The notes: generated by a model not told the origin, from the letters alone. A DNA stretch of 64,000 nt from Macrostomum lignano (GCA_002269645.1 NIVC01000983.1:62001-126000); one strand, 5' to 3'; positions 18,638 through 64,000 are shown, counted from the first letter of the stretch. Program-made: numbers and translations.

Positions 18638-27628
<8,991 letters not shown>

Positions 27629-31763: not shown

Positions 31764-32824
31764 ATGCTGACGGATCTGATTTTGCCTCTGCTGCAGCTGC
31801 TGTTGCTGGCTGTCGCTGGTCGAGCCGAAGCTACAAACGGCTGTGCCACGCACCACACTCTGCAGCCGCTGCACAGCGACTCCTGCGTCCCGGACGCCGA
31901 CCTGCAGCGTCAGCTGCGGCTGCCCAACGCGCAGCTCATGCCGGGCGCCTCGGACGCGAAGTCCTGCGCGATGGCCTGCGCTTTCCGACCGAGTGCGTGC
32001 GCGGTCACCCAGTTCCGCTTCGTCGCCCGGCTGTGTCACGTGACTGCGGACCTGCCCGACCGGCCAGCGAGGCCGAGGCGGCCGGCACGGCGAGCCACGG
32101 CGACTGCGTTGCGACGCTGCTAAGACGCGACGCTTCCGGAGCGACCGGCTGGCAGTTCGCCGCTCGGCTGTCGGCCTTCTTCGACTTCCGCATCTCCGAC
32201 CGGAACCTCGGCGTCGTCGGTGTCGGCTCGCCGCTCTCCGCGCCTGCGCAGCTCGTCGGTACCGCCGTGCGCAACGCGTCGGGCGCCGTGCTGCCCGGTC
32301 GGCTCGACTCGTTCGTGATGATCGGCGTGGCGCCGCCGGGTTTCCAGGCCTTCGAATCGTCCTCGAAGGAGTACACATTCTTCTTCAGCATCGCGGGAAT
32401 GCCCAGCGTTCCTACAGGCCAGACGCACCTGCTTCGAATCGTGCCTTCCAGCAATCCAACTAGTAAATTCTGCTCGTTCGCGTATTTTTCAGATGGTGAC
32501 ATGATGTTCGGCAACTTGTTCACTGAAACAATCGGCTACGTGACGGACAACTCCATGCCGCTGGCTGCAAAGCAGAAGTTTAATGTCGCTATGAGATACA
32601 GCACTTCCACAGCCTCTAAGGCCGTGTTCAACGGCTCGATCTACTCCGTCAAGTCATACAACACGGACTACAGTCTCCACACCGACACTGTTTTTGACGA
32701 GATCCGGCTCGGATCGGAAGGCACCCAGAACCACTACAGTCTGGATGCCACCATCGTCTGCTTCGCCATGTCGCAAGGCGCTCTAACAACCCAGGAGCTC
32801 CAGGCTATCGCATCTGTTTGCTGA
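31764..32824 (+). pseudogene. PAN/Apple + LamG-like secreted protein, copy 1 (1-nt deletion near 32056)
   Basis: Signal peptide, C-x3-C-x6-C module; CCTGCC-CGACC lacks one G relative to copies 2 and 3. May be a consensus error. Confidence 0.8.
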
Positions 32825-34288
32825 TAAGCATTGCTTCCTGAGGAACCGAATGCTTCAGTTTGCAGATCTTTGACTTAAATAACTGATGAAATAAACTGTC
32901 CAGTTTTTGGATGCCAGCTTTACAATTTTTAATATTTATTACCTATTGCCCTGGGTTGTAGCCTATAGCGTCCCACTGAACAGCTACGCAAGTGTAATCA
33001 AATATTATGATAATTTATTTATCTGATTATTACTGTTGTTGTCTGTGGTTAAGTTTATTTTACTCCTGTCTAGATAGTCTCTGGCCTACTCTTTCCTAAA
33101 CTCTGTACTAGTTGAGCCTGCTCATAATGTAGCTTCACCCCTTCGCTTTCTGTTTCTATCATTATTTGGCTCACCATTGTACACAACTAACTATACACTG
33201 ATCAGAGTTGTGAGTGAGAGTACAAGCACGCTTCATTTTTTTAAATCGTCAGCAACTATGACTACAAGCGTAGGACATCTGTACTCGCTGAGGTTGCGCT
33301 TGCACTGATGAGTGACCTAATTCCGCCTTTAGTGCAAAATACGGTTCTGGATATTTTAAATCTGTCAAGCACTCTCGTACTTCATTTATTTCAAATGAGA
33401 TGGTTTATGGGATCTTTATCTGGAATGATAGCTATTGTCTCACTATCAACTGAAAATACATTAACTAGATTATGATCAAATCATTATTTTGCAGCAAATG
33501 AGATACTGTTTTTGATTATTCAATGTACGAGCATTTCATTATTTTCTTGTGCATTTCTGGTTTTGTTACCAGCTTCTTTCTCCCATTAGGCCAGAATTTC
33601 AGTCAATATTTGCTGCTACTTAAATGTGCATGAGCAGCAGACGAGATAAATGCTTCGCTTCTCTATTTCCTCGGCTCTCTTCGCTTGGCTTGCTTTCTAT
33701 TTTCTGCTGCTCACTCAGCAATGAATAGACTTGATTTCTGTCTTCCCAGTATCCTGCACTGCTATGAAGCAACTAAAGCATAGAGTAGAGTTCAGTAGCG
33801 TAACCGAGTCACACTTCGCCTCTGCAGCCTCGCCCTAGCGCCTCTCCTCCAGTGGATTCAGCTCTTCCCTTAAATTTCATCCCAGCCAGCGTTATTTTCA
33901 GGCATGACATCAATACGATTATTGTTGAGCTAAATGCGATTTCTTACGAAGGCTGTCTCAAAATTTGGATGAGTTTTCAATCGATCACTTGCCAACTGTC
34001 ATTAAATACCTCATAGTTCACTTAACTGTCCATTCTGCCCTTGTGTTTTTTCAAGAGCGTTGCTATATTATGCAAGATATCAATACATGGAATCCCTGAC
34101 TAAAGCTGGCTTTCTCGTGACGTTAATTGCATTTCGCTTTGATTTGCTTTTGATTGGTCTGTCGGTTTGTTTGATTCACTACGAGTGAGTCACTAACGCG
34201 TTACCAAATGCCTTATTCGTGGCCTCAGGAGCATATTGGGTTAGGAATTAACAACAAGCATTTAACTCGGTGTACATAAGGGAAGGCA

Positions 34289-34458
34289 AGACGGACGAAA
34301 CTCAGCCTGGGGGGCAGGGCAGGCCTAATCTAGCTCAGCCAATGAGAGAGCAGTAAAGAGAGAGGTCAAAGTCAGACGGACGAAACTCAGCCTAGGGGGC
34401 AGGGCAGGCCCAATCTGGCTCAGCCAATGAGAGAGCAGTAAGGAGAGAGAGGTCAAAT
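34289..34458. repeat. Two tandem ~85-bp copies, each with a GCCAAT box
   Basis: AGACGGACGAAACTCAGCCT...CAGCCAATGAGAGAGCAGTAA at 34289 and 34374. Confidence 0.75.
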
Positions 34459-35134
34459 GAAACGCATGACCAATGACACATTTCGGTTAACAGTCAATAG
34501 CGCTTACGCATGTTATTATAAATTTTCTTCGAAATAATAAAAAATTCTGATGTATTCTGATAACTTTTCCTTTATAATCCCTATCTTTGAAACATTTGAA
34601 GCTCATCCACGTAGCAATGCAAGTATTTTTGTTTTACACATTACTGAAATACTGTGGCTGCTAGGGGGTGTTGCTGAGAGGTCAAGGTTCATTTGCAAAA
34701 AAAGCTGAGATATCAAGGCTCGGGAGGGAATTGTTGAAATGATGTGACTCTTTAGGAGATATGCTGAGATGTCAAGTATCACGGGGTGAATTGCATGGAC
34801 GTCAAAGCTCGCGGTGGAGTTTTGAAATGCTGTGTTTCATATGGGGGGGTTGCTAAAATGCCGAGTATCAGTTGGAAGATGTTGGTAGGTCAAGCTAAAA
34901 GTAGATCATACAGACAGTTAGGTTTAACCCAAGGCTTACAGGGGGCTTTGATACTGACGCTCATACGGGATGATAGCTGGCTTTCAGGGCTGATGATTTT
35001 TGCGTTAAACATCATTTTTAGGATAAGCTCGTATTAACAATAGCGACTGTACAAGGTCAAAACCTACAAGTGGCTTATTCAAAGATGTTTATTCCTTTTT
35101 TGCCCCTCCTATAGCACAGTCACACAGTTAGGTA

Positions 35135-36199: not shown

Positions 36200-37272
36200 A
36201 TGCTGACGGATTTGATTTCGCCTCTGCCTCTGCTGCAGCTGCAGCTGCTGTTGCTGGCTGTCGCTGGTCGAGCCGAAGCTGCAAGCGGCTGTGCAACGCG
36301 CCACACTCTGCAGCCGCTGCACAGCGACTCCTGCGTCCCGGACGCCGATCTGCAGCGTCAGCTGCGGCTGCCCAACGCGCAGCTCATGCCGGGCGCCTCG
36401 GACGCGAAGTCCTGCGCGATGGCCTGCGCTTTCCGACCGAGTGCGTGCGCGGTCACCCAGTTCCGCTTCGTCGCCCGGCTGTGTCACGTGACTGCGGACC
36501 TGCCGCGACCGGCCAGCGAGGCCGAGGCGGCCGGCACGGCGAGCCACGGCGACTGCGTTGCGACGCTGCTAAGACGCGACGCTTCCGGAGCGACCGGCTG
36601 GCAGTTCGCCGCTCGGCTGTCGGCCTTCTTCGACTTCCGCATCTCCGACCGGAACCTCGGCGTCGTCGGTGTCGGCTCGCCGCTCTCCGCGCCTGCGCAG
36701 CTCGTCGGTACCGCCGTGCGCAACGCGTCGGGCGCCGTGCTGCCCGGTCGGCTCGACTCGTTCGTGATGATCGGCGTGGCGCCGCCGGGTTTCCAGGCCT
36801 TCGAATCGTCCTCGAAGGAGTACACATTCTTCTTCAGCATCGCGGGAATGCCCAGCGTTCCTACAGGCCAGACGCACCTGCTTCGAATCGTGCCTTCCAG
36901 CAATCCAACTAGTAAATTCTGCTCGTTCGCGTATTTTTCAGATGGTGACATGATGTTCGCAACTTGTTCACTGAAACAATCGGCTACGTGACGGACAACT
37001 CCATGCCGCTGGCTGCAAAGCAGAAGTTTAATGTCGCTATGAGATACAGCACTTCCACAGCCTCTAAGGCCGTGTTCAACGGCTCGATCTACTCCGTCAA
37101 GTCATACAACACGGACTACAGTCTCCACACCGACACTGTTTTTGACGAGATCCGGCTCGGATCGGAAGGCACCCAGAACCACTACAGTCTGGATGCCACC
37201 ATCGTCTGCTTCGCCATGTCGCAAGGCGCTCTAACAACCCAGGAGCTCCAGGCCATCGCATCTGTTTGCTGA
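36200..37272 (+). pseudogene. PAN/Apple + LamG-like secreted protein, copy 2 (1-nt deletion near 36959)
   Basis: TTCG-CAAC versus TTCGGCAAC in copy 1; otherwise nearly identical to copy 1. May be a consensus error. Confidence 0.8.
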
Positions 37273-37397
37273 TAAGCATTGCTTCCTGAGGAACCGAATG
37301 CTTCAGTTTGCGGATCTTTGACTTAAATAACTGATGAAACAAACTGTCCAGTTTTTGGATGCCAGCTTTACAATTTTTAATACTTACTATTGCACTA

Positions 37398-37700
37398 GGG
37401 GGTTGTAGCCTAGTGGTTAGAGCGTTGGACTAACGACTGAAAGGTCTGGGGTTCGATTCTTAACCCGAAAAAAATTGTGTCCTTAAGAAAGACACTTCAT
37501 TTTGCATTGTTTCAGTTCACCCAGCTGTAAAATGGGTGCCAGCATTAGCTGGGGTAATTGAGGGTGTGTGTGGCGACCCCCCAGTCCTTGGACTGAGCCG
37601 CCGAACGCAGCCTTCAGATGCTCCACGCAATAGCTGCGGCTGAGCTGTCGGTTGCACATCTGGCCCAATTGGGGCAAGTGCAATCAATTATTGTTTGTTA
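37398..37700 (+). mobile_element. tRNA-derived SINE with CORE-like central domain
   Basis: A box TAGCCTAGTGG, B box GGTTCGATTC, then TGTGTCCTTAAGAAAGACACTT...CACCCAGCTGTAAAATGGG resembling the CORE consensus; AT-rich tail. Confidence 0.75.
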
Positions 37701-39344
37701 TTACTTACAAGACTTCAGATGACTTACTATATTTATTGGCTCTTCGTGTATGTCTGAGGTAAAGTTTATTTTATTCTTATCTAGATTTTCTCTAGCCTAC
37801 TCTTTCCTAACTGTACTAGTTGAGCCTACTCTAAATGTAGCTTCGCCCTTTCGCTTTCTGTGTTCTATCATCCTTTGGCTCGCTATCGCACACAGGACAA
37901 GCGTAGGACATCCTTTCGAGCTACACACTGAGGTAGCGCTTGCAAAAAAGAGTGACGTAATTCGACCTTTAGTGCAAGTAGCCCGTCGATACGGCCGAGT
38001 ATTTTAACTCCGTCAAGTACTCTCGTACTCCATCAACTTCGATTGCGATGGTTATTACCGATTATATTGCCGATTCTGTTAGGTAATTCAGAGTTCGGTT
38101 ATTACGGAATCTTTACCTAGCATTATAGCTATTGTCTGACAAATAATGGAAAATACATTAGTTAGATTATGATCAAACCATTATTTTCAACAAATGAGAT
38201 ACCGTTTCTCATTATTCGATGTATTTCATTTTCTTTTCGATTCTGGTTTCTGTTGTCATACACCTTCCTTCTCCAGTAGCCCAGAATTTCAGTCAATATT
38301 TACTGCTACTTACGAGCTAAATCTGTGTGAGCAGCAGAAGAGATGAATTTCTCGCTCCACAAAAGCCTCGGCTTCGCTTGGCTTGCCTTTTTATTTTCTG
38401 CTGCTCACTAGGCAATGAATAGGCTTGCTTTCTGTCTTCCAATTCTATTGCTCTCGCTCAGACTTCCGCGTTGCTATGAAGCAACTAAAGCATTCAGTAG
38501 AGAGCCCAACTGGGTCCCGACATCACACTTCGCGTCTGAAGCCTCGCCCCAACGCCCTTCCTCCGCTCGATTCCTCTTCCCTTACCTCTCGTCCCAGCCA
38601 GTGTATTCTCAGGTACAAGTATGACATCACATAATTTCGATTATTGAGGTAGCTAAATGAGATTACCTACAAAAGGCGTCTTACTCGTATAAGTTCGATG
38701 AGCTTTCACTCTCATTTCGCTGTTGAATGTTCAATTACTCGGTAACTAACCAGGACCGACTCTGATTAGCTTGCTAACCGTCGGTGAATGCCCTAACCCT
38801 ACTCAGCTAGCTGCCCTTCGTCCCTTGTGTTTTTCCAAGAGCGATGTTAGATCATGCAAGATACCACTGCATGGAATCTCTGGATGAAGCTGGCTTTCTC
38901 GTGACATTAATTGCATTTCACTTCGAATTGCTTTTAATTGTTTGTCGGTTAGTTTGATTCACTACGAGCAATTCACCAACGTGTCACCATGATGTGTTCC
39001 TTACTACCAAGACTTTATTAGTAATCAAGGAACAATCACTTCTAGCCACTGCTAGGCAACCCAGTAATCAACTGAAGGTATTTGTTACCTTGAGTCCTGT
39101 TTTGTAGAGCGCTCCCGGTGAGTAGTTCTCGCTTTAACTCAGTTGAGGATATCCTGTCGACTGGTAAATCAGGCGCCTCGCTTCCAAGATCTAGGTCCTA
39201 GTTCCTCAAGTATTCCTTGGATTCGTTTCCGGCCGGTATCTGCAGTCAGGACCAATCAGAAGCTTCGAATTAACAATGGGATCCCTGCGCCGTAATGCGG
39301 TTTTAAATATGCCTTCTCCTTCTAGCAGTGCCTTAGGGAGTTTT

Positions 39345-39861: not shown

Positions 39862-41400
39862 TCAGGTGGACGCAGCCTGCAGCTGCGAAGCCATGAAAGA
39901 AGCAGAGCGCTGGCGGCGCGACAGGGCAGAGCTGGCAGAAAAGTAGCGGAGAACAGCGTCCGTTCTCCAGCCCCGTAGATCCCGAACGTCCGATTCTGAC
40001 AAGCCGATTTGATGGCAGAAGCTGGCACCCCCACGCCGGATGCTGTGGCCGGAGAAACCAGCAGCTGGAAGGCCGCACGCAGCCAGACACGCACGAAGAC
40101 AGCTGATGAACCGGCTGGCTGAGAGCTCGCCTCCGTGGCCGTAGCCAAAGAGTGGCGCCCTTGGGTCGCTGACTGGTGACAGGTGCAGGTGAGACAGTAG
40201 AGCGTGCACAAGGCAGAGTGGTGACTCTTGAACAGGTGGCAGAAGAACGACATGCGGCGTCGACCCGAACTGGTTGGTCTTGGACTTAGGGAGGGCCAAC
40301 ATCCAGCAGCCAGATGAAGCCGACAGGCAGGCCCGTGAGACAGAGCGGCTGCCGCGGGTCGATAGGAAGTCGCCAAGGCGCAACATGCCCCACCAGCCCA
40401 CCAGAAGAGCCGCCCAGAAGGCGGCCCTGAGATCTGCGCTTGAGATGGAGCGCGGGAGCTGCTGATGGATGCTCTTGAGGTGCTCGATGGTCAGCGGCTT
40501 CGCCTGTTTGCATCGCAGGCCCAGATGACATTTGGCACCGCGGAGGGCCAGCTGCACGGTGAATTCTTTCGCTGGGTCGGGGGCGCCGGTGGCTTGGTGC
40601 AGAAAGGAGACGGCATGGATGTAGGATCGGAGGCTAGAGAAAGACCGGAGCCGGGTGCTCACCAGGTGCGCAATGTAGCGGCAGAGCAGGTCACCATCAG
40701 CTGGAGATGAAGGGCGGCCTGCGCTAACACAGAAGGCTTTCCAGGAGCGCAGCTGGCCAGGAGTTCTCCGCCAGGCCGAGGCGGCACAGGCGTCCGGCGG
40801 ACACAGCGCGAGGGGCGGGCGGCGTCTCCGGAGGGCGAGGGCGACCTGCAAAAGGAGGCGAGATTGAGAAGCGGCAGAGAGCGCGTGCGACGCGAACTCA
40901 AGCGGGCAGATCACGAGCGTACGGTAGTAGCGGCAGCAAAAGTTAATGAGCTCATGCTGCGAGGCAAACATGCGGGAGGCGGCATCAGCAAAAATCTGCA
41001 TGCGACCAGGAAGGTGAAAGGCCTCCAAACTGATGCTGTTCCTGATGCACAGCAGAGCCACAGTCTGGTACACCTGCAGGAACCGCGGGTCACGACAGCT
41101 CAGCCGATTGATCATGCCAGCAGCAGCGGTGCTGTCGGTGTAGATGACAATCTTGCAGTTCTTTAGCTGAGAGCGACGGTGCAGGATGATCAGCAAAGGT
41201 GCCAGAGCCTCCTTGAAGTTGATATGAACATCCTTGAACACACCACCGCAGTCCAGCTCCCAGTCGATGACACTCCAGAAACTCTCGGCACCCCAGATGA
41301 CTGCGGCTGCGCCCGACCGGCTGCTGTCAGTCTCCATGGCAAACTCCTCATCAAAGCGCGGCCACAAAGCCACCGGGGGAGCCAAGCCAGGGCTCTGAGC
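39862..41400 (-). pseudogene. RNase H and tyrosine recombinase of the DIRS-like element
   Basis: METDSS...HINFKEALA...YTDS...ADAASR; then MLRLGD, KSKTNQ, GHSIRRGGA, RGWRTDAVLRY. Confidence 0.88.
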
Positions 41401-42650
41401 CACCAGGACAGGTTGGCGCGGGTCTCATCGGTCACCCAAAGCTTGCAGTCATCAGCAGTTGTCAGCCAGTCGAAGAGCGGACGCAGGAAGACTCTGACAT
41501 GAGGGACAATCTGACAGAACCAGCCAAGCTTGCCAATCAGCTTCTGAGCAGAGCGCAGGTGCACCCGAGTCTCCGAGCAGGTTTGAGTCAGCAGCTTTGT
41601 CGTCTCGAGAGCTTTCTCCTCGGGCAGCGACTTTGTGCCGGTAGCGGTGTTGATGCGCACGCCAAGGAAGTCGATGCATTGCGTAGGTCTGACAACCTTG
41701 TCCCAGTTGATGGCAAAGCCGAGGCGCTGCAGGATGTCCAGCAGGCAATTGAAAGCAGCGAAAGCCTCGGACTCGGATTTCCCAGCGACTGCCCAGTCAT
41801 CCAGGTAGTTCACCGTAGCAGAAAAGCCAAGCCGGTGCATGTGCCGGGTAACGGCGGCTGAAAGGCGGTGAAAAACTTCGCAAGCAGCTTTGGCGCCGAA
41901 GGGAAGCCTGGTGTCGCAGAGCAGACTGTCCTGGCTGTCTGAGTCAAACCGCCAAGCGAGGCCGACGAGCCGGTAGTCAGCAGGCCTGATTGGCACGGAC
42001 CTGTAGGCGCTTTTGAGATCAATTTTGGCCATTCAGTGTCCCGGACGGAGATGACGAACCAGCTGCTGGACAGTGCAATACTTGATGTGCTTCTGTTGGT
42101 CGTAGAAGTCGTTGACAGACTGGCCGGTCGGATCGGACAGGTCATGGATCAGGCGGACCCGCCGTAGGACTTGGGAAGGGCACCGATGGGGTTGATTTTG
42201 ATCGGGCCGCTCCACCGGATGTACCTCCCAAGGCGCAGCTCCTCCTCGACCTGGGCTTCCACAGCAGAGCGGTGCACCAAGGCGGAGGCGTGGTTCTTGG
42301 ACGAAGTCAAAGGTGGCTGGCCAGCATTGGTGAGAGCGAAACCGTTGACGACGCCTTGCATCAGAAAGTCGCGGTCTGGGTCGTCGCTGAGCAGAGCACT
42401 CCAGGCGTCAGGTTGCAGGTCAGACGAGATGGGCAGCGAAGAAGTAAAAGCAGAAAAATCGGAATTAAAAGCAGAGCAGTCAGCTGGATAAAATGGCATC
42501 AGTTTTTTGCACTCGCACCAGTCACGTGACCCGGCAGCTGTCCGGTGAGTAATGGCTGCGGCGACTGCGTGTGAGCGTGAGCCGGGTGCGCTGCCAGGCA
42601 GCCTTGGATTTTGCAGACGTGGCGGAACTTGCAGTTCTGGCGGTTGCATC
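41385..42650 (-). pseudogene. Reverse transcriptase of the DIRS-like element (frameshift near 42160, TGA at 42033-42035)
   Basis: PIGALPK / RLIHDLS.P.GQSVND / KIDLKSAYR / LPFG / YLDD / FLG. Confidence 0.9.
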
Positions 42651-43616
42651 CGGACACGGAGTTGAAGCGCAGACAGATCGGCCTGGTTGCTGCCGGGATT
42701 TGCTGCTGGCTGGGCTGCTTAGCGAATGTGAACCGCAGGTTTCTGGGGGCGTTGAGGTGCTTGTGGTACAACTGAGGGGGCTCCTCACCCCACGCCATGC
42801 CCGACTTTGCCACCAGCCTCCGGTAGTCCTCGTCAAACTCCCAGATTACGGACTCCGCGGGTAGTCAGCAGCCAGCAGCTCTCCAATCTTGCGATTGTAG
42901 TCAAGGTAGCCAAGGACGTCAGTCAGGAGACCATCAGTGCTTCCAGCAGCCGCCGGGAGTTTTTCCTTGATCAGCTTTTGCAAGATGATCGAGTTGGCCG
43001 CGATCCACTGACCAGCAGAGATACTAGACAGCTTCGGCTCCTGCTTTCTGAATGTGAGCGAGCCATTCTCCATAGTGGCGACCAACTGCTCCTGACTGGC
43101 TGAGCCGGATCCTCTGGCTAGCTTGATGTGGTCTCTGACGAGATGCAACCTGCGAGTTGGAGCCTGGCAATTAGCGGCCTGAAGCTGAGCCGCCTGCCTC
43201 ATCCCAGATTCAAAAACCTCGGGCAACTGCAGACTGGCATGTGCGTTTTGCTCACCTGATGATGATGCTGGCTGGGGCTGAGCCGTCAAGCGCTGCTGAG
43301 TGTGAAGCTGTTGCTGAAGATCACGACGACGGCCTTCCAGGACTTGCAGTTCGAGCAGCTCCACCTCCTGCCGCAGCGCAGCCAGCCGGTCGCTCCCCGC
43401 CCCCGGAGGCGCCTCGCCCGCGCTGCCGATGCCGTCTTTGGCGTCCGGAGCAGAAGTCATCTCGGAGTTGTTGACGTCTTCGTCAGCTTGCTCTAAACCG
43501 AGTGCAGTAGACAAGCGCTTGGCAAGCTGTTGTTTGCGGCCCGTAGTAGGCAGGCCTCTGTTTCGCAGCTCAGCCTTGAGTTGGCGCACGTTTAGTCGCT
43601 TTGGGCTGGCACTCAT
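42499..43616 (-). pseudogene. gag-like ORF with N-terminal SAP motif and C-terminal Cys/His finger (frameshift near 42850)
   Basis: LNVRQLKAELRNRGLPTTGRKQQLAKRL (SAP); CLRFNSVSGCNRQNCKFRHVC...C...H. Confidence 0.8.
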
Positions 43617-44360
43617 GGCGGTGGCTGAGCAAAAAAATTGAGAAATGGCGGCGGAGCCAAGCCGGGCCGGGTGCAGAGGCTTTAAGCTGGCCGGCGCGGC
43701 CAACACCCCCACACCTCAACCCCCCGCCAAAGTACAGCGATATGTACAGCGACACCCTCCGGCGTGTCTAACACCCCTTACTCAGAGAGTAACGATTGCA
43801 TTAAATAAGAAAATTTAGGGTAAGGGAAAACTATAATACAAATTTTAGGTAGCACAGGTTGCACTAATAGGAGTCGTGCCTCAAAAGAACCTAGAGTCTA
43901 GACCATAGAAAATCATAGGAAATAGTAGGACAATGTGGGTGTTTTACTATCTGCTAATATCTGTTAAACTATCGTTTGTGGTACTTCAATTAATTTATTG
44001 TTTTTACGGAATGGACAAGTCATTTCTCAGTAGATTCCTGTCCTTATTCTTTAATTTCTCATGCTAGGATAAGGGGAATGCCGGGGCTCCTGGTGGCAGA
44101 GCTAGCGAACTACAAAACATTCTACTAAGATTCTACTGTATCTACTAAGATTAAAACAAGAATAAACCAGTATAGCCTCGATCAACACGGGAGCCATGCC
44201 ACTAGCAATGGGATCATGGACACACAGACAATCTTCATCGATCTCTGCCCGAACTATTATTCTATCCACATGACGTGTCAATCTATTCTCGCTTAGCCTA
44301 GCAACTGGGACCTTTGGCCACTCTGTCACAGTTGAAACATTTTCTATGGTTCAAGCAAAC

Positions 44361-44563
44361 TGCTGTGTGTGGGCTCAGGGCCATAGACACCTGGGAACCA
44401 CCACAGTAAGTTTATTTTATAAAGTAGAGCAGAGCAGAATTTAAAGAAAGCCAAGAGGCCTAGAAGTCGCTTGGCGTGAGCGCTCTGAAATATATGAGTA
44501 CAAAACTCACTCAATCGTCTGACAACAACCGAATGACTCCGTCTCCTTACTGCATACATAACA
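44361..44563 (+). repeat. 5' LTR (203 bp)
   Basis: One substitution seen against the 3' LTR, apart from the insertion. Confidence 0.95.
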
Positions 44564-44603
44564 GTGGCGTCGCAAGCTTTTGGATTTAGTCAACTTGCGA
44601 GAT

Positions 44604-47600
44604 ATGTCGAAGTCACCAGGAAAAGTACCTGGTAAGACACCAGTGAAGTCTCCAGTGAAGATGCCAGCAATAGCTCCGAGCATGCTCTCACAGGATGCGA
44701 CTTTGTCGAACCAAAGCAGCCGTCCAACGTCGGGAATGGCCGAAATAGAGCGATTGGACGAGAACTCTAGCCTGGAGCGATGGATGGATCGCTTCGAGAT
44801 CGCGTCGAAGTTCTTCAACTGGAGCGCGACCGACAAGGCTCAGGTGCTGCTTTTGAGGCTCGCACCGCAGCTGTTTGAAAAACTGGCGGACTATCTGGCG
44901 CCCAAAAAGCCTGGAGATAAGATATTCGACGAGCTGAAAACAGCGCTGGGGGATATAATGCTGCCCAAAACGTACGTCCTTGCCGAAAGATTCAATTTTC
45001 AAAGTATAAGACGAGAACCAAACGAAACAGTGCGAGTGTTCTCCGAGCGATTGATCAAAGCCGCAGAAAAGTGTGAGTTTCAAAACAAGGACGAAAGACT
45101 GCGTGATCAGTTCATTTGCGGCCTAAACAACCAAGGCATTATTGGGAAGCTTATCGTCAAAGATCACAAGAAGCTCAGTTTTAAGGACGCAGCTAGCGAA
45201 GCAGAAGCGCATGCAAGTCTGTTGGAGACTCCTATTATGAAGAGTGCACCAAAAACTGAGGCTGGGTCCATCTTAAAGGTCGATTTATCGAAGCCTAGAA
45301 CCGTCGAAAAGAAGAGCAATCGGACTCACGGAAAGGGTCTCGAGAAGGCGTGTCAAAAGTGTGGACGCGCACATGCCAGGATGCAGTGCCCAGCGTTTGG
45401 GAAAAGTTGTAATAAGTGCGGTAAGCCTAATCATTTTGCGAAGGTCTGCAGAAATGGTGAGAGTAAAAGCAGGACATCAGGCGGAAATTCTGTACAACAT
45501 GTAGCTGGGAGTGGAAAAATTTTCGCGGCGGAAGCCCGAAGGTGTTGTCAGCGACAGCAGCCTCGAGAGCCGATTGCTATCACGGTGAAGATTCTCGAAG
45601 CAAACAGAGGGCATCCCATCCGTTGCGAGCTCGATACGGGAGCTGGAGTGTCGATCTTGTCAGAAGCCTTGTGGAACCAACTTGGTCGCCCAACTCTAAG
45701 ACCTTCGGACGTAAAGCTGGGAGGCTATGCGAGTGACCATACGTTTCAGGTATTGGGAAGGTATGAAGCGACTGTTGATATCGAAGGCGAATTTCGGACA
45801 ATCAATTTTGAAGTTGTGAAAGGGAACAAGAGCTACGCTCTTCTTGGAAGGGACGTGCTTTGTGTCCATCTGGAATCAAGTCAGGCTGTGGGAGAGGCGG
45901 CACCTTGTGCATCTATGAAAGCGCATCTAGAGTTAAAGGCGGGCGCGACACCGAAGCACATAAAGGCAAGGCCGTTGCCTTTTGCCCAACGTGAAGCTGT
46001 TCAGAGAGAGATAGATCGATTGCTCCAGGAGGGAATCATAGAGCCTGTACGTTTCGCAGAGTGGGCATCGCCTATTGTGGTCGTGCCGAAACAACGTGGA
46101 GGAATTCGGCTCTGCGTGGATTACAAAAGGACTCTAAACCCGCAATTGGTACCTGACAGCTACCCGATGCCGACTCCGGAAGAAGCGTTTTCAGTAGTAT
46201 CTGGCTGCAAGCGATACACGCTGCTCGACTTGGAGAAAGCCTACAATCAAATCGAGCTGGATGCCGGATCAAAGCCGCTAACAGTGATGTCAACACCATT
46301 TGGGAATTACCAATATAACAGACTAGTATTCGGGATAAAAACGGCGCCGTCCATTTTCCAAAGATATATCTCAGAAGTAATTCAGGGAATCAATGGATCT
46401 ATAGCCTACATAGATGATGTGTTGATCGGTGGAAAGGATGAGGACGAGCTGTTGTCAAGAGAGGAGGAGGTTCTGCAGCGGCTGGAAGCAGAGGGACTGC
46501 ATGTAAATAAGGAAAAGTGCCAGCGGAATCAAAGCAGGATTCGGTTTTGGGCCACATACTCGAAAACGGCAACATTTACCCAGACGAAGAAAAAGTTCGT
46601 GCAATTAAAGACATGGAAGCGCCTAAAAACCTGGCTGAGCTAGAATCATTTCTGGGCTTAGTGGCATTTTGCTCGCGGTTCATTCAGAATTTAGGTGACC
46701 TGACTGCTCCGCTGATGCAGCTGAAGCAAAAAAATGTACCCTTCGAGTGGGGACCGAAACAGAGCAAGGCGCTGGAAAACCTCAAAGCTTCAATATCTAG
46801 AGATGCGCAGCTAACGGCCTATGATCCAGATCGGCCTGTGGAGCTCGAGGTCGATGCTTCGCAGAAGGCCCTGGGAGGAATTCTGAGCCAGGAGGGTCGT
46901 CCAGTGCTCTACATCAGCAAAATATTGTCGAAGGCTGAGCGAAACTACTCGCAGATGGAACTTGAGGCGTTGGCCATAGTTTGGGGTGTTCGCAGATGCC
47001 ATCGATTCTTGTGTGGCAGGAAGTTTACGCTGGTTACCGACCACAAACCGCTGGTTTACATATTTGCCGTGGACAGCGAGCTACCTGCTCGTGTTTCAGC
47101 GAGATTGCAGCGTTGGTCGATTTTGCTTACGGCGTATGACTACGAAATCAAATATCGAAACACCAAGGCGATGTCATCAGATGCGTTGTCCAGACTAGTA
47201 TCGCAGCATAAGAGTGAAGCAACTTTGGAGATTGGAAATGTAAATGCTTTCTGCACGCTGTTGCCAACTGAAGAGATTGTAAAAGCAACTCGAGAATGCA
47301 ACGAGATGCAGCGCTTGTTGAGTGCTATCAGATCAGGAAGTTTCAAGTCACCGAAGCTACGAGCCTTCAAGCCGGTCCGAGATGAGCTCACAGTACAAGA
47401 CGGTCTAATTCTTCGAGGTCATAGAGTAGTGATACCTCGTTCACTGCGTTGTAAGACGATCGGAGTGGTTCACCAAGCACACCTGGGAATAGTCAAATCT
47501 AAATCTCTGGCAAGAACTGAGTTCTGGTGGCCAGCGATGGACAAAGACTTGGAGAAAACCATTAGCAAGTGCCGGGTATGCCGATCAGCCAAACCACAAA

Positions 47601-48415
47601 ATAGAGATTTTCGGACGCCCTGGCCGCAGGCTGCTGGGCCATGGCAGCGAGTTCATGCAGATTTTGCAGGACCAATTCAGAAACAGTACATCTTGGTGCT
47701 GGTAGACGCATACACTGGTTACCCAGAGATTTACATCGTTAATGACATGAAGTCGACCACAGTAATAGAGCGTCTCCGTCGAACGTTTTCCCAGTTCGGA
47801 GTACCACAAACTTTGGTTACCGACAACGGGCCGAGCTTTATGAGTTCTGAATTGAACCAGTGGCTCACGGAAATCGACTGCGAGCATCTTACTACGCCAG
47901 CGTATCATCCGCAAAGCAACGGTGCGGCTGAACGGCTGGTAAGAACTGTGAAGGAGACAATAGAAGCAAACGGGTTCAGTCAGAAGACGATTGACCGTTT
48001 TCTTTTGTTTTATCGAGCGTCGGCTGGCAGAAACGGTGTTTCACCTGCAGAGCAAATGTTTGCGAGAAGGATTCGGGTGCCGTTCACTGCTAGGCAGGTC
48101 GGTCTCGAGGAGCAGGTGATTTACAAGAACTTCCGAGATGCTGCGGTTCCGGCAAGAATTGTGCTACCGCTAGGAAGGAGCATGGCGCTCATCAAGACTG
48201 AGGAACAGAAGCCAGTCTACCGGAGGGCTCATCTGGATCAACTGAGGCCATGCACCGACTCTGATCAACAGCCTGGAGGTCAAAGGATCAGACGGCAGAG
48301 CAGTCCAATATCGACCAGCTGCCCAAGTCCGGGGAAGAGGGAGAGCCGGAGGACAAAGAGCATCTCCCACCGAAGGATCAAGGCCAGCCACGGCGCAGCT
48401 ACCGACTGGCGCTAA
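44604..48415 (+). CDS. gag-pol polyprotein with a single 1-nt frameshift near 46548
   Basis: Two Cys/His knuckles, protease LDTGA, RT YIDD, RNase H VDAS, integrase HHCC plus HADFAG/TDNG/E. CGGTTTTGGGC needs one more T for RFLGH. Confidence 0.93.
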
Positions 48416-48643
48416 AGCCACGAGTTGACTATACATGCTGATGTTGGCTTGCATTGTCTACTCACTAACTTGCGCTACCCATTGTAAGGGGGAAGGTGCT
48501 GTGTGTGGGCTCAGGGCCATAGACACCTGGGAACCACCACAGTAAGTTTATTTTATAAAGTAGAGCAGAGCAGAATTTAAAGAAAGCCAAGAGGCCTAGA
48601 AGTCGCTTGGCGTGAGCGCTCTGAAATATATGAGTACAAAACT

Positions 48644-48835: not shown

Positions 48836-49044
48836 CACTCAATCGTCTGACAACAACCGAATGACTCCGTCTCCTTAATGCATACATAACACAAACAGTT
48901 TAAGCAAATATTCTTTTGTGGTTGGCATGTTCGAGGTCGAGGCCTGAAGTTGGCTATTAGTGGTCCTTGGATCGTCCATGGACTCTCGTAACAAAACTGC
49001 ACGGAATCCAACAGCAGCGGAGTCCATTAGCAGGTCGCTTCTTC

Positions 49045-49084
49045 ATTGGCTACCGCTGCATGCAGCCTCGGAAAACGCTTTATA
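49045..49084 (+). promoter_or_regulatory. Reverse CCAAT box and TATA-like element upstream of copy 3, conserved in copies 1 and 2
   Basis: TTCATTGGCTACCGCTGCATGCAGCC is identical upstream of copies 1-3; TTTATAA at 49078, TTTAAAA at 31702. Confidence 0.5.
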
Positions 49085-49158
49085 AGGGTACGAAACTTGC
49101 GGAAGCGACTCAAACACCGATTCAACTGACTCAAAGTGACTCAAGAGAAACGAACGAT

Positions 49159-50229
49159 ATGCTGACGGATCTGATTTCGCCTCTGCCTCTGCTGCAGCTG
49201 CTGTTTCTGGCTGTCGCTGGTCGAGACGAAGCTACAAACGGCTGTGCAACGCACCACACTCTGCAGCCGCTGCACAGCGACTCCTGCGTCCCGGACGCCG
49301 ATCTGCAGCGTCAGCTGCGGCTGCCCAACGCGCAGCTCATGCCGGGCGCCTCGGACGCAAAGTCCTGCGCGATGGCCTGCGCTTTCCGACCGAGCGCGTG
49401 CGCGGTCGCCCAGTTTCGCTTCGTCGCCCGGCTGTGTCACGTGACTGCGGAGCTGCCGCGACCGGCCAGCGAGGCGGAGGCGGCCGGCACGGCGAGCCGC
49501 GGCGACTGCGTTGCGACGCTGCTGAGACGCGACGCTTCCGGAGCGACCGGCTGGCAGTTCGCCGCTCGGCTGTCGGCCTTCTTCGACTTCCGCATCTCCG
49601 ACCGGAACCTCGGCGTCGTCGGTGTCGGCTCGCCGCTCTCCGCGCCTGCGCAGCTCGTCGGTACCGCCGTGCGAAACGCGTCGGGCGCCGTGCTGCCCGG
49701 TCGGCTTAACTCGTTCGTGAAGATCGGCGTGGCGCCGCCGGGCTTTCAGGCCTTTGCTTCGTCCTCGAAGGAGTTCACATTCTTCTTTAGCCTATCGGGC
49801 ATGCCGAGTGTCCCGACTGCAAATCTCCATCTTCTGCGAATCGTGAATTCCAACAACCCCACTGGACCATTCTGCTCATTCATGTTCTTCACTAGCGGCA
49901 GCAAGCTGAAGTTCACTAACTTTTTCTCCGAAACGATCGGCTACGAGACCGTCAACTCGATGCCGCTCGTTGTGCAGCAGAAGTTTTTTGTGGGTGCCAT
50001 CTATAGCAATGCTACGGCTGCCTCCACTGCTCTCTTCAATGGCACGACTTACTCTGTCACGCAGTATAACAGCTACACTCTCAGTGCCGATACTGTCTTC
50101 GACGAGATCCGGCTTGGATCGGAAGGAACAGGTGATATATACTCTTTTAAGGGAACGATAATCTGCTTCGCCATGGCTCCAGTGGCCCTGTCGCCTGAAG
50201 AATCCCGGGCCCTCGGCTCCATCTGCTAA
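49159..50229 (+). CDS. PAN/Apple + LamG/concanavalin-A-like secreted protein, copy 3 (intact, 356 aa, intronless)
   Basis: Signal peptide; SCAMACAFRPSAC...LCHV; C-terminal DEIRLG...FKGTIICFAM...ALSPEE resembles the LamG_3 ending. Domain names come from motif recall, not a search. Confidence 0.85.
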   Translation: MLTDLISPLPLLQLLFLAVAGRDEATNGCATHHTLQPLHSDSCVPDADLQRQLRLPNAQLMPGASDAKSCAMACAFRPSACAVAQFRFVARLCHVTAELPRPASEAEAAGTASRGDCVATLLRRDASGATGWQFAARLSAFFDFRISDRNLGVVGVGSPLSAPAQLVGTAVRNASGAVLPGRLNSFVKIGVAPPGFQAFASSSKEFTFFFSLSGMPSVPTANLHLLRIVNSNNPTGPFCSFMFFTSGSKLKFTNFFSETIGYETVNSMPLVVQQKFFVGAIYSNATAASTALFNGTTYSVTQYNSYTLSADTVFDEIRLGSEGTGDIYSFKGTIICFAMAPVALSPEESRALGSIC

Positions 50230-58046: not shown

Positions 58047-61000
58047 CGTGTCATGCATAAATGGAGGACAACCCAACACCATGACCTCAAACGAATATAG
58101 CAGCACTAGGGATAGTGGGTAGGTACAACAGCAATAAGGCATAAGATGTAAGCTCATATTTCACAAACTTATTGAGTTTGTTTAAAAGTTTAAACTTTGT
58201 TTAAAGTTTAAAACGAAACGATTCGACACCAGCAATTGGTAAAATATTCATAGTCTATTATTTTCTCCAAAAAGGATATAGCCAATCTATTTAGGAGCAA
58301 TGAACCTAAAGAATAAAAACATAATATTTTGTATACTTCTAGTCTTCTTTTTCTGGTAGGAAAGCAAAAATCAGCCTCAAATGTATTTATTATTCTCTAG
58401 ACAGAAACAAAAAAACATTTTTTTAGATATGCCTCATTTTAATTTGCCAAATAGTTACACAAGTTAACAGTGAATGCAATCATAAGATTACTAGACAGCA
58501 ACTTTTAATATACAATAAGAATAACTTTGACAAACTCGAGAACTAAAACTTTAGTCGAAGTTGTCTCAAAAGATTCTTACAACGAAAAAATATTCCACGA
58601 TTCTTTTCAAATAAATTTCTAAAAAATGGTATACAGTTTATAATTTCGATCTCGTTCTTCTAATTATATACCATAATAATAAAAAAATTCAATGGAAGAA
58701 CTTTACAATAGTTTTTTGTTTCTGAAACCTATATTCAGATAGTGTTTTAGGCAAGTATAAAATACTATAATTAAATTTAATTCCCGGTTAAGAAAATTAA
58801 ATTTTACTCATAATGTTCTACAAGACTACAACTCTAACCCCCTATACTTCACTCTGTTGTGTTGTTTATCAAAGTAATTTAAATTGATCCAGTCTAGCAC
58901 CAAAAGGGAAACCTTTTAAAGAAAAGCTTTGGTAATAAATAAACGGATTCTACTATTTCCATCCGTTAATGGACCAGATATTATTTCTATGACTAAATAT
59001 GACTTTGCAAAAATGAGAAAAATAGGCATAAATTCCCACTGTCAAATATATATCAAATCGCTTTTTTCTAAACAAAATAAAATCTGTTCATTATTTCATT
59101 TTCATTACTTCATTACATAAGTTTTTTACATCTTTTTTCTACATTAAAACCATTTATTGTAGTTCATTTGGCAAGTCATAATCAAGATTTGTTCGCAAAA
59201 GTCTCATTTTTTGAAGCAAACATAGACTCTTAAGAAAATTAACGATCTGGTGGCCTAAAATATATTCGGCCCATTGATGAAGTTGAAGAAATGTCCTTAA
59301 TAGCAACAATTAAAATTGTGAATAAGGTTACAAGTTTAACTTTGTCGATTAGTAATTTTATTTTTAAATAAACTTATTTTTCTAAGTAAGCGAAGACTTT
59401 ACTCTGGCACTAAAAAGAATAATCAACTTTTGTTTTTTCTGTTTATTTCGCAAACGAAAACACGTTTTTTGACAAAGCTTTTCCGTTGGTCTATGAACAC
59501 GTGGAAATTTGAATAAGTTGAGTATATCTGAGGATTCTGAGCTGCGGGTCGAAGCAAGGACTAATTAAACGATAAATAGTCGTTATTGGGTCTATGAATT
59601 AAAAAGCAATAAATAGGACGCTAACTTCATGAAATTACATGTAAAACTTGTATGTGTAGAATGAAAAGTGGAGGAAGTAGCGGAACTTGACGGAATAAAG
59701 ACTAACTTGAAAGTTTCCAGCATACATAAAACAATGAATATATTCCATTTTCTTATCATTTGAGACATTCCCTCACAATTCTCCCAAAAAGTATGGGGAG
59801 GTATGTTGATGGGTTCGGCCTTTTTAAGCCTGTAGCTTCGGGCCTCAGAACTCAGAAATGAATCTCTAAGAGCTTTGGCCTCTCGCTCTTGTCAGATGGT
59901 CAGCGCCGAGATAGCTAGATTGTGGGCGAGCAGCTAGGTCTTATAGCTAAGAGAAGACAGCGAGAGACCAGCAGGGAGAATTTGAAAGGTAGAAATTAGC
60001 TAATCCGCAGATTAATTAACCGGCTGCCACCACTCCGTGCGCCCCGGCTCACCAAACCGGAGCTGTCGAAATCGGACTTTCGAGTCTTCGACTAGAAGGG
60101 CACTGCACTTACCTGCCATCTAGTGTCTTTTAGCTGTCTATGTCTATCTCGAAGTCATGCATAGCCGAATAGAAGGGACACTACTGGGACTAAGATCGCA
60201 TTGGCCATGCAGGGAAAGAGAGGACTTTTGCAGGGGGTTCTTGCGCTGGCGAGCTTTCAAGCACTGCCCAATGTACTAACTCATTACCAAATTCCCAGAA
60301 GTACATGTACAAGTACACATAACTGCACGCTTTTGGCACTAAATGTGTTAACACGTCGACAGATAGCGATGATGTGGGTGTATTGTCACCTTTGGAGACC
60401 TTTACACTAGCATTTAACTCGTTTTAGCCTCTTAGCTGCCTGAGACTGCACGAAAGTACCGGTCTGGCACTTATTTATTCTGCATGTTTATCATGATTGC
60501 TTAGATCGACTGGGTACTGTGTCGCTTCCGGTCCACTGACCTCTGCTCCTAGATCTAGCCGCTCATCTCAGCTGGCATTGCGAAAAAGAAAGAAAACGCT
60601 AAGTCTTTAACTTCCAGATTTAACTTTCTCACTTAATTCACAATTCTAAACGCCTTAGATTGAGTCGGAGCGAATAGCTACTTTTAATTTTAAACGGAAC
60701 TTCTGCCTCGAGTTTGGCACACGAAAACAAGAAAGCAAAAGTGCAAATCCTATCGGACTACCAAGGAAGGGGTCAGACAATTGGGGCGCACCCAGTTAAG
60801 CAGGTCAAGAAAGTCTCTCACCCAACCAATCAGAAAACCTAACTGCCGGTAGCCAAGGATTCCACAGAGACCGAAGCGCTCGGACGGGATGCTGATGCTG
60901 AACTTAGCTGACGAGCGCCGCAGTTGTTCTTCGCTTGCCGGTTGCTGTCGCTGCTTTTAGATCACGACCAGGAAGTCACGGGCGATGCTGTCCAGGGGGA

Positions 61001-61313: not shown

Positions 61314-61431
61314 CTGAGCTTAAGACCCCAAAACCAACCCCACCGAGTGGGCTCCAGACCCCAGGAAAGTTGACAGGTGCGATCATAAATCATACAAAAA
61401 CGAATAAAAGTCACTTGTCTAGACATCCTGG

Positions 61432-61597: not shown

Positions 61598-62436
61598 CAT
61601 CCTGTGACTGCAAAGTGACTGCAAAAAGCTCATAACTCAAAGGAGAAGGTAATAGGGCGAGTGGGAAGGAGACTGGAAAGACCTCTTTGACCCAGACAGG
61701 CTGGAGCCAAAAGTGACAGCTAGACCGCAATAAATCACCAAAAATAGTGAAAAAGTCACAAATCGGGGGGGGGGTCAGGATGAGATAAAAACATTTCTCC
61801 CAGACTTAGTGTCGCCTGTCTAGACTGTTAGAGGTCAATCCGTCCCAGACCCAGACAGCCTGACCTTCAACCAAGCGTAAACAACCCAAAAATAGAATCC
61901 TAGGGAAAGTACATTAAATCCCTAACATAATTAATGGTAATGTCATAAAATAGTATAGCACTCAGCCTAGATGAGAGAATAGAGAGAAGATCCTAAGCTA
62001 GCCTACTGACAGTAGGGGGAAAAGCGCATCGGAGCTAAATGTGCGGTTTAGTGGTCCTGGTACGCGTGTCATTACATCAGCAAGAAAGCTACATGTACCT
62101 CAGTACCTTACGGTACATGTAGCCCAATAAAATGTAAGAGTACGAGCTACTATAGCTTACATTTTCAGAACTGCATCTCACCTACCGATCTGTACAGATG
62201 TGATAATTACATGTACGGTCCATGATCAGCACACCAACTACAAGGAGCTGTTTTGTGACCCCAGATTCTCAAATCCTGCATGGCTATGCCAAATGACATT
62301 TACGATAGTTCGCGAAGTCCTTTTTCTGTAATTTTTCTTTCGCAACGATTCATATATCCATGGAATTTTCTGAAGTTTCAAAAATCTGCCGTGCAAAATC
62401 TGTAAAGCGTGATGTAGCTAGTTAGTTAGAGTTAGA

Positions 62437-62745
62437 GGCTGTGTGCACCCTGGCGCACTTTAAGCGAAATGCGAAATGGTCACACAACCGGCGAGAGGCA
62501 TTGCTGCCCATTCCGCCAACTCCCCTGAGCAGGCACACAAGCGCGCGGATACGTACGCAGTAACGCAGTCGTACGCAGGCACACACTCACACAGGAGTGT
62601 ACAGCGGCCCTAACTTTATTTATCGTTAGGCATGTACACTTCACTGTGCCTTGGGGGTTGGCCTTAAAGCCGTTAATTGCACGAGCAGAGCCAAGCCGAG
62701 ATTCCAATTTAGCCCCAAATTAATGTGACTGCACCTGGAATCGAG
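62437..62745 (+). repeat. Dispersed ~300-bp repeat, copy B
   Basis: Aligns with 22794-23100. Confidence 0.85.
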
Positions 62746-63212
62746 CCTGGGCCCTTGGCACATCAGAGCGACGCGCGAGACCACTAAAGCGCGATTTAAG
62801 TTCTTAATTCTGAAGTTCAAGTTCTCCAGTACTCAAGTTCACTGTTTTGTAAACATTGAGCCAGTGAGAATCCACTTTTAGACTCCCGCGAAAGACTCTG
62901 CAATGTCGCAACTTCATGAAATCCAGTTTCAACCAGCTAGTGCCTATCGTGCAAGAAGCCAACAGGTAGAGATGCACTTTATGGCTAAAAAATTCACAAG
63001 AAGACAGATGCTTCACAAGTCATCCCAAGCCTTCCGCGACTGTTTTTCCCCTCATTGTAACCCTAATTGGCCTATTGGCTAGATGGGCGCTCACGGTTCT
63101 TCAATGCTCACTGGGGCTTTCATGCTACATGCAGTCGAGTATTTACCCAGATCCGCTTAGAAACAATGGAGAGAATTTTGCCAATCCGCTTCAGCTCCCA
63201 CAAGGCAATCAT

Positions 63213-64000
63213 ATGGCGGCTCTCGCAGCCATCGCTACTCTGCTGCTGTACGCCCAGTTGTCGCCCGCTTCAGCGAATGGCTTCAGCGGCGGCTGCCAGG
63301 CCCAGCACTCAGTCCGCCCGCTGCACAGCGACTCCTGCGTGCCGGACGCCGACCTGCAGCATCAGCTGCGGCTGCCCAACGCGCAGCTCATGCCGGGCGC
63401 CTCCGATGCGGAGTCCTGCGCGCTGGCCTGCGCTCTCCGACCGAGCGCGTGCGCGGTCGCCCAGTTCCGCTTCGTGGCCCGGCTGTGTCACGTGACCGCG
63501 GAGCCGCCGCGACCGGCCAGCGAGGCCGAGGCGGCCGGCACGGCGAGCCGCGGCGACTGCGTGGCGACGCTGCTGAGACAGGGGGGGGGGGCGGAGATGC
63601 TCCGACCGCCTGGTCGCTCGCCTCCCGACTCAAAGTGTTCATCGACTTCCGCGTCTCCGAGTTGAACCTCGTCGCCGGGTCGGCGGGCTGGCCGGCGGCC
63701 GCTCAGCTCACTGGCGCCGCGTCTCGCAACTCCAGTGGCGCCTGGCTGCCCGGCCTGCAGACCGCCCACGTGCTGATGCGCCTGCCGCCTCCCGGCTACC
63801 AGGCGGTGGCCGCTGCCAGCCAGGAGTTCGCCTACTTCTTCAAGGTGCTGGCCGACCCGCCAGCATCGGCGAGCTCGCAGCGCCACTTCATGCGCATCCT
63901 GTCAGCCAGCGACGGCAGCCAGCTGAGCGCCTTTTTCTATACTGTGGGCGGCCGGGTCCGCTTCTCCAACCTGTTCACCCGGCCGAATCCGTTCGAGGCC
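63213..64000 (+). CDS. PAN/Apple + LamG-like secreted protein, copy 4 (divergent; frameshift in G11 run 63581-63591; runs off the right edge)
   Basis: PAN module nearly identical to copy 3; after the G run the shifted frame reads AWSLASRLKVFIDFRVSELNL...PPPGYQAV..ASQEFAYFF...HFMRIL, homologous to copies 1-3. Confidence 0.8.

Follow-up and report, generated by a model that had tools for sequence, protein, structure and literature searches.

How can one module of a small gene family be almost identical in DNA among all copies of the gene while the adjoining module of the same genes is divergent? The question is raised by a 64,000-nucleotide stretch from the flatworm Macrostomum lignano (GCA_002269645.1 NIVC01000983.1:62001-126000; the whole stretch is referred to here as the window, and positions are counted from its first letter), which holds a cluster of four single-exon genes of an apparently lineage-restricted family of macrostomid flatworms. 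Each gene is predicted to encode a secreted glycoprotein of ~330 residues, composed of a PAN/Apple-type module with six cysteines and a beta-rich domain of ~230 residues. A preliminary description of this DNA had proposed a constant-plus-variable recognition family (immune, mucus or adhesion), in which the PAN module is kept uniform and a lectin-like binding domain is driven to diversify. We consider it likely that this constant-plus-variable look was produced by non-allelic gene conversion, acting in patches on tandem paralogues that are themselves old. The look would then be set by where the conversion tracts ended, not by module-specific diversification.

Four tandem copies with one uninterrupted frame

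The copies, numbered c1 to c4 by their position in the window, all lie on the plus strand with start codons at 31764 (c1), 36200 (c2), 49159 (c3) and 63213 (c4). Frame and alignment analysis agreed with the preliminary description on these four paralogues, and tblastn searches of the 64-kb window with c3, both halves of c4 and an outside homologue (see below) as queries returned no further copies or fragments.

31764..32824, plus strand: c1, ATG to TGA; a 1-bp deletion behind 32056 interrupts the frame
36200..37272, plus strand: c2, ATG to TGA; frame broken by a 1-bp deletion at ~36958-36960
49159..50229, plus strand: c3, 356 aa; the sole intact open reading frame (ORF) among the four copies as assembled
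63213..64000, plus strand: c4, divergent paralogue; the window end cuts the gene at ~codon 262
63581..63591, plus strand: homopolymer of 11 G; site of the c4 frame change, abutting the 3′ edge of the c4 patch described below

At the c1 break the sequence reads CTGCC-CGACC, where the other copies have CTGCCGCGACC; at the c2 break it reads GTTC-GCAAC, where c1 has GTTCGGCAAC at the same site. The 11-G run of c4 is likely either an assembly length error or a slippage-prone tract. The genes had been described as intronless, and none of c1–c4 indeed requires an intron, but an uninterrupted frame is found only in c3. The sequence for the hydrophobic signal-peptide core in c1, c2 and c3 is a CTG/CAG-rich, microsatellite-like run (31790-31810, 36226-36260 and 49185-49215, respectively), which differs in length by 2–4 codons among the three copies and is the least conserved part of the c1–c2 pair (94% identity).

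Differences between the copies are clustered

The four copies were compared in a codon alignment, with an N inserted at each 1-bp break for the purpose of analysis only. The segment encoding the PAN module occupies the following positions.

31866-32125, plus strand: PAN segment of c1
36314-36574, plus strand: PAN segment of c2
49267-49527, plus strand: PAN segment of c3
63318-63578, plus strand: PAN segment of c4

The near-identity of this segment in the DNA of all four copies, noted in the preliminary description, was confirmed at 93.8–99.6% in the pairs given here (c1–c2 99.6%, c1–c3 96.5%, c3–c4 94.3%, c1–c4 93.8%). The c4 signal peptide is 37–41% identical in DNA to those of the other copies (41% for c3), and the parts of c4 outside both the PAN segment and the signal peptide are 45–63% identical to the other copies; for c3–c4, the identity is 63% in the proximal and 48% in the distal C-terminal domain. 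These parts of c4 had been thought to be alignable only as protein, which applies to the signal peptide and the distal C-terminus but not to the first half of the C-terminal domain, which can be aligned as DNA at ~63% identity (blastn reaches 63804-63840). c3 matches c1 and c2 at ~96% up to codon column 214 (~49795, directly 3′ of the residues TFFFS) and at 66% beyond it. Amino-acid identity in the latter part is 59.4–59.9%, in good agreement with the drop to ~55–60% after ~49790 that had been estimated by eye. Thus the earlier observations stood as regards the copies, the PAN identity and the c3 drop, and required correction as regards the integrity of the reading frames and the alignability of c4.

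Clustering of the differences was evaluated by a maximum chi-square segment search with 200 permutations in five comparisons. None of the 200 permutations reached the observed value in any of the five, also when third codon positions alone were considered (maximum chi-square 41–172 for c3–c4, c1–c3 and c1–c4). The low-divergence block of c3–c4 comprises columns 38–125, with 15/262 differences inside and 236/512 outside; that of c1–c3 comprises columns 0–214 (23/620 inside, 147/433 outside). Uniform divergence along the gene, the pattern that the preliminary description had set against its own model, was therefore not seen. The patch shared by c4 extends from five residues before the first cysteine to seven residues after the last. 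This coincidence of the patch with the domain boundaries is as the recognition-family model would have it; the silent sites and the selection estimates, presented next, are not.

Silent and non-coding sites are homogenised within sharply bounded tracts

Three putative conversion tracts of different extent were delimited, along with a short interspersed nuclear element (SINE) that bears on the age of the c1/c2 duplication.

63318..63578, plus strand: internal conversion patch of c4, 261 bp, exactly the PAN module; 94% identical to c3 49267-49527
48892..49795, plus strand: c1/c2–c3 tract, c3 side, ~96% identical; partners c2 35929-36842 and c1 31656-32393
31850..32930, plus strand: c1–c2 tract, c1 side, 98–100% identical (~99.8%); partner c2 36298-37378
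37396..37720, plus strand: SINE with a tRNA-like head and a TACTAT target duplication, within the 3′ flank of c2, with no counterpart in c1

The c1–c2 tract (~1.08 kb) runs from codon ~30 to ~100 bp beyond the stop codon, with a synonymous divergence (dS) of 0.01. Outside this tract, the 5′ leader and the 3′ flank of the two copies are only 60–85% identical, with values down to 30%, and contain many indels. Since these flanks are divergent and the SINE is present in c2 only, the duplication is old and the gene body was overwritten recently. The c1/c2–c3 tract (~0.9 kb) reaches from the promoter-like region through the 5′ leader to codon ~212; between c2 and c3 it starts ~270 bp upstream of the ATG (35929 and 48892, respectively). 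The c4 patch is flanked on both sides by divergent homologous sequence, and hence neither a single crossover nor a recent duplication can produce it. Older divergent homologous flanks on both sides are found for the c1–c2 tract as well.

Silent sites follow the same boundaries. For c1–c3, dS is ~0.09–0.15 in the 5′ 60% of the gene versus 1.4–1.8 in the 3′ 40% (by segment, ~0.09 for the first 217 codon columns and 1.58 for the last 143 codons); maximum-likelihood (ML) and LWL85 estimates of dS agree for this pair. For c3–c4, dS is 0.16 in the PAN segment versus 0.7 to >2 in other segments, third-position identity is 85–95% inside the PAN patch and 35–60% outside, and across comparisons the dS of the c4 patch ranges from 0.13 to 0.30. 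Non-coding DNA is homogenised too, as the tracts take in the promoter region and 5′ leader as well as the 3′ untranslated region (UTR). The homogenisation of silent sites alongside replacement sites argues for conversion rather than protein-level constraint, and it is equally a point against the recognition-family model, since protein-level selection cannot homogenise silent sites. The locus thus displays both clustered differences with sharp tract edges and homogenised synonymous and non-coding sites, as expected of conversion. The GC content at third codon positions (GC3) is 0.85–0.95 in the tracts versus 0.5–0.7 in the unconverted part of c3; GC-biased conversion may be the cause of the raised GC3.

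We propose that conversion would have overwritten patches of different extent and age on old paralogues, which are old because their unconverted parts show dS of at least 1.5 and because the flanks of c1 and c2 are divergent. Three nested events of rising age could account for the pattern: an exchange between c1 and c2, one between c1/c2 and c3, and the patch in c4. The PAN segment is common to the three tracts and would for this reason look "constant", and the distal C-terminal domain, being outside two of the three tracts, would look "variable". The similarity retained in the PAN island may make further conversion there more likely.

Two explanations without copying can be set against the same data. 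The PAN-coding DNA might be kept by a function at the nucleotide level, such as a regulatory element, a structured RNA or an antisense gene. Long antisense ORFs do lie over the PAN segment, and the segment is very GC-rich; however, antisense ORFs are expected in DNA of 70% GC, the extent of the shared tract differs by pair (gene plus 3′ UTR; promoter to codon 212; PAN only), and a scan of the window against Rfam gave no match. We regard such a function as extremely unlikely to be the explanation. Alternatively, the shared segments might result from a collapsed or chimeric assembly of repeats, as the assembly may carry indel errors. The c3 and c4 tracts, however, differ by 4–6% from the others with distinct informative sites, and every copy is set apart by flanks and transposon insertions of its own, which leaves this artefact hardly credible.

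The distal C-terminal domain is under purifying selection

The claim that the binding domain diversifies was examined through the ratio of nonsynonymous to synonymous divergence (dN/dS). The divergent C-terminal half of c1–c3 (143 codons) gave 0.19 by NG86, 0.22 by LWL85 and 0.16 by ML. The preliminary description had itself named a ratio well below 1 in this domain as contrary to its model, and three methods agree on such a ratio. The distal C-terminal domain is under ordinary purifying selection. Moreover, homogenisation extends to the C-terminal domain in every part that falls within a tract (100% identity for c1–c2; 96% in the first half for c1/c2 versus c3). For c4, every segment estimate of dN/dS is <1, and "below 1" is all that these estimates support because dS is saturated. 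The NG86 ratio of the proximal C-terminal domain of c4 (0.6–0.7) is above that of other regions, as the recognition-family model would predict, but this ratio rests on the saturated dS, and relaxed constraint on a possibly dead copy fits equally well. Nor is the copy number of the kind expected from that model: the window holds four copies only, two of them with identical C-terminal domains and three with broken frames. The features of families of the type of fibrinogen-related proteins (FREPs) or variable-region-containing chitin-binding proteins (VCBPs), namely dN/dS of at least 1 or hypervariable patches in the variable module and many divergent copies, were not found. We therefore consider a recognition family with a diversifying binding domain very unlikely. 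What holds of the earlier interpretation is the tandem family of secreted-looking proteins, the PAN-like module and its homogenisation at the DNA level; diversification of the C-terminal domain is not supported.

Frame breaks: assembly error or decay

All three frame breaks (c1, c2 and c4) are single-base length differences, which raises the question of whether they are real. A retrotransposon between c2 and c3 is informative in this respect.

44361..48643, plus strand: Ty3/Gypsy long terminal repeat (LTR) retrotransposon; 147-bp LTRs 100% identical, 4-bp AAAC target duplication

If the breaks are real, the cluster may be decaying, with c1, c2 and c4 as pseudogenes, c3 as the only functional gene, and the mosaic as a selectively neutral side effect of conversion among functional and dead copies alike. 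Consistent with decay are the three independent 1-bp breaks, the AATAAA signal that is kept in c1 and lost in c2, and the dN/dS that is highest in c4. On the other hand, one of the three breaks lies in the 11-G run and another in a GG run, and the c1–c2 tract contains two substitutions, both silent, as against two frameshifting indels, a ratio that is unusual for real mutations. The Ty3/Gypsy element is young: its LTRs do not differ and its target duplication is intact. Even so, its pol frame is broken by a 1-bp difference at a T-run (46545-46548), which suggests deletion-type assembly errors. We therefore lean towards doubting that the breaks are real, and a decaying cluster is possible without being the explanation we favour. 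The gene-conversion explanation holds whether or not the frame breaks are real.

By analogy with known systems, one might further suppose that recurrent conversion keeps the PAN island as a shared module and that the broken c1 and c2 act as silent donor cassettes patching an expressed c3. This supposition appears very improbable; if it were true, it would represent pseudogene-templated variation of a flatworm secreted lectin-like protein, resembling pseudo-V conversion of chicken immunoglobulin genes.

Predicted protein architecture

The single hydrophobic segment of the family proteins is N-terminal (signal peptide at ~ residues 1–22 of c3), so the proteins look soluble and secreted, in support of the earlier view of a small tandem family with a secreted appearance. 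In c3, the PAN/Apple-like module with its six cysteines spans C43–C117 and is followed by a beta-rich C-terminal domain at ~125–356. The cysteine framework is shared by c3 (C43, C70, C74, C81, C93, C117), c4 (C42, C69, C73, C80, C92, C116) and the outside homologue Mlig013932 (C40, C63, C67, C73, C85, C107). The core spacing in c3 is that of PAN/Apple domains, C-x3-C-x6-C-x11-C, with the outer pair in addition; a core of four to six cysteines characterises the domain (PMC9249922). Against a Pfam gathering cut-off of 21.4 bits, PAN_1 (PF00024) scored 17.9 bits in c1, 18.2 in c3, 20.5 in c4 and 19.9 in the homologue over the equivalent region (E-values 4e-4 to 3e-3). The conserved six-cysteine framework and these weak matches at the same place support the N-terminal PAN/Apple-like module proposed earlier. 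An NAS sequon at residue 173 of c3 is present in all copies and in the Mlig013932 homologue, in the form NSS in c4.

Scans of the consensus of the family hidden Markov model (HMM) against Pfam, and scans against NCBIfam, gave no match. Sequence and profile searches of the PDB returned only noise of the designed beta-trefoil or Kelch-like type and a non-significant match to a microneme PAN protein. An hhalign alignment of the C-terminal domain with human C-reactive protein covered the terminal motif only, with a probability of 0.2%. From sequence comparison with the homologue described below, a Laminin_G_3/ConA-like jelly roll is the probable fold of the C-terminal domain (~230 residues). The architecture is best, if tentatively, read as PAN plus a ConA-like domain, and secretion, PAN and LamG-like folds and a role in binding a ligand (protein or glycan) may be expected.

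An outside homologue in M. lignano

Exhaustive HMMER searches of 1.84 billion representative proteins yielded a single credible relative, BOX15_Mlig013932g1 (P0002) of M. lignano (E-value 8.7e-5), and word-indexed homology searches with c3, the family alignment and P0002 as queries returned nothing but P0002. It is a protein of 338 aa encoded by a single 1017-bp exon and carries the UniRef name "Apple domain-containing protein" (uncharacterised). The pairwise alignment is collinear over 302 residues with 24% identity (E-value 1e-11), and nine cysteine positions, an RNASG sequon and the C-terminal motif CF..(x)LS..E....C are common to the homologue and the window family. Length class, the single exon, the signal peptide, the six-cysteine PAN framework and three cysteines at matching positions of the C-terminal domain are alike; the identity is only 24%, however, and the window genes are in tandem whereas BOX15_Mlig013932g1 is single per locus, at two near-identical loci with no tandem array within the 10-kb flanks. 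Laminin_G_3 (PF13385) aligns to residues 191–329 of the homologue over model positions 16–149 of 151 with 27.4 bits (E-value 4e-6), which is 0.2 bits under the gathering cut-off of 27.6 bits. Against the PDB, the homologue scored best with a microneme PAN lectin, at a non-significant E-value of 0.7.

The second HMMER match, a 4294-aa repeat protein that is presumably bacterial (P0001), was rejected as a repeat-inflated compositional match rather than homology: its similarity to c3 (36% identity) is confined to a T/Y/Q-rich stretch of 50 residues, repeated 24 times.

A search of the literature, including supplements of M. lignano papers, found no occurrence of Mlig013932, no expression or functional data on it, and no described PAN plus LamG family in flatworms. 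The sole homologue is thus an uncharacterised M. lignano protein, as is consistent with the earlier remark that this is not a described family. The gene at the M. lignano locus L001 has 63% GC within surroundings of 43% GC, a contrast like that in the window, and has a block, CAATGCAG...TATATAAAA, similar to one found before the window genes.

49044..49085, plus strand: promoter-like block of c3, with ATTGG (an inverted CCAAT), then CATGCAG, then TTTATAAGG

The equivalent blocks start at ~31667 in c1, ~36075 in c2 and ~63065-63130 in c4, and they may act as promoters. Separately, the heptamer GACTCAA occurs two to three times within 60 bp before the ATG of c1–c3 (31712-31749, 36148-36185 and 49107-49144). 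The window has 17 matches, of which these make up 8, against an expectation of 9 for its whole length, and in two of the c2 and c3 occurrences the heptamer reads TGACTCA, an AP-1-type core.

Points that weigh against the proposed reading

Several points weigh against conversion or against the PAN plus ConA-like architecture. First, the c1/c2–c3 tract may derive from one unequal crossover giving rise to a chimeric gene, since its 5′ side is unalignable and two-sided homologous flanks are thus absent there. Second, the comparison covers the window paralogues, and the number and direction of the conversion events are accordingly tentative. Third, dS values involving c4 are saturated or distorted by the strong GC3 bias, and ML and YN00 estimates were absurd or failed there. 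Fourth, three of the four copies are broken as assembled, and the function of the family in this genome therefore rests on c3. As regards the folds, PAN_1 was below the gathering threshold in every member scored, and lectin and LamG models of Pfam gave no match in any window copy at E-values up to 10. AlphaFold2 prediction of full-length c3 with the window paralogues had a mean predicted local distance difference test score (pLDDT) of 28.9 and was unusable, and prediction of the C-terminal domain with the homologue added (pLDDT 29.6) gave mostly strands and a terminal helix but was unreliable.

Other features of the window

The window is eukaryotic in character: coding islands of high GC are set in DNA richer in AT, and there are retrotransposons, a SINE and numerous minisatellites. 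An ARAGORN scan of the window gave no match. A second retroelement lies between c2 and c3.

39862..43712, minus strand: DIRS-like retroelement; reverse transcriptase and SAP-domain ORFs, several frame breaks

A 513-aa ORF of this element, without a Pfam match, was read as being of the tyrosine-recombinase type. Over 281 bp, part of the SINE (37396-37668) shows 86% identity to M. lignano L001 20055-20335, beside the BOX15_Mlig013932g1 gene, and another repeat (59836-60253) shows 79% identity to L001 2086-2475 over 422 bp. These shared repeats make an origin of the window in Macrostomum or a close relative most likely. A non-coding interspersed repeat at 62434-62748, ~470 bp upstream of c4, is 86% identical to 22790-23091.

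Very large minisatellite arrays are found, among other places, at 55077-57413 (24 bp × 96, with a higher-order period of 241 bp), 1343-5329 (23 bp × 173) and 27017-27399 ((CAGA)n × 96), and such arrays create long spurious ORFs in the window. The 55–57 kb array lies between two minus-strand ORFs with GPGAY-type repeats (54561-55082 and 57426-58157), which, judging by the repeat motif, resemble exons of a sperm-tail PG-rich (ODF3-like) gene. The neighbouring genes include an ORF of an Arf-family small GTPase, which precedes c1 by ~1.1 kb (29824-30675; Pfam Arf, 106 bits), and, at 23164-23943 on the minus strand, a FERM-domain exon (FERM_M and FERM_C).

Discussion

Patchy conversion between duplicated genes is familiar from the human Gγ- and Aγ-globin genes, in which a simple-sequence run marks the end of the tract, and from the red/green opsin and RHD/RHCE genes. 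The genes described here resemble these systems in several respects: the duplicates are old, their near-identical tracts have sharp edges and extend to silent sites and the non-coding leader, the flanks diverge more than the tracts, and GC3 is raised in the tracts. As in the γ-globin genes, a simple-sequence run, here G11, borders one of the tracts. Nothing essential differs from these systems; here three nested tracts happen to share the PAN segment. The mechanism is textbook concerted evolution, with no sign of a new molecular mechanism.

The protein family is uncharacterised and lineage-restricted, yet built of known domain types, and one member is already public under an automatic Apple name. 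PAN/Apple modules are known from the N domain of plasminogen and hepatocyte growth factor, the apple domains of factor XI and prekallikrein, and apicomplexan microneme lectins. The window proteins share with them the core cysteine spacing, the outer cysteine pair and weak PAN_1 matches at the same place; they differ in their sub-threshold scores and in having a single PAN module followed by a partner domain that is neither a protease nor a kringle, and their PAN fold is a putative one. Like Laminin_G_3 domains and pentraxins, the C-terminal domain is beta-rich and has a terminal helix motif of the form ...LS.EE..., and the homologue matches nearly the full model, whereas the window copies do not match it and the homologue itself falls just short of the cut-off.

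Snail FREPs combine immunoglobulin-superfamily and fibrinogen domains and are diversified partly by gene conversion. Like FREPs, the present genes encode putatively secreted two-module proteins, are clustered, and show conversion among copies. Unlike in FREPs, conversion homogenises here, the copies are few and lack a hypervariable region, and dN/dS is well below 1. Conversion alone can thus mimic a constant-plus-variable receptor architecture, which calls for caution in scans that seek diversified families of the immune type.

The cluster offers a compact example of nested conversion tracts of three ages within 32 kb. The family is very narrow, with one outside homologue among ~1.8 billion representative proteins. 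RNA interference and transgenesis exist in M. lignano, so the role of the family can be tested there; if expressed, its product would be a candidate lineage-specific secreted binding protein.

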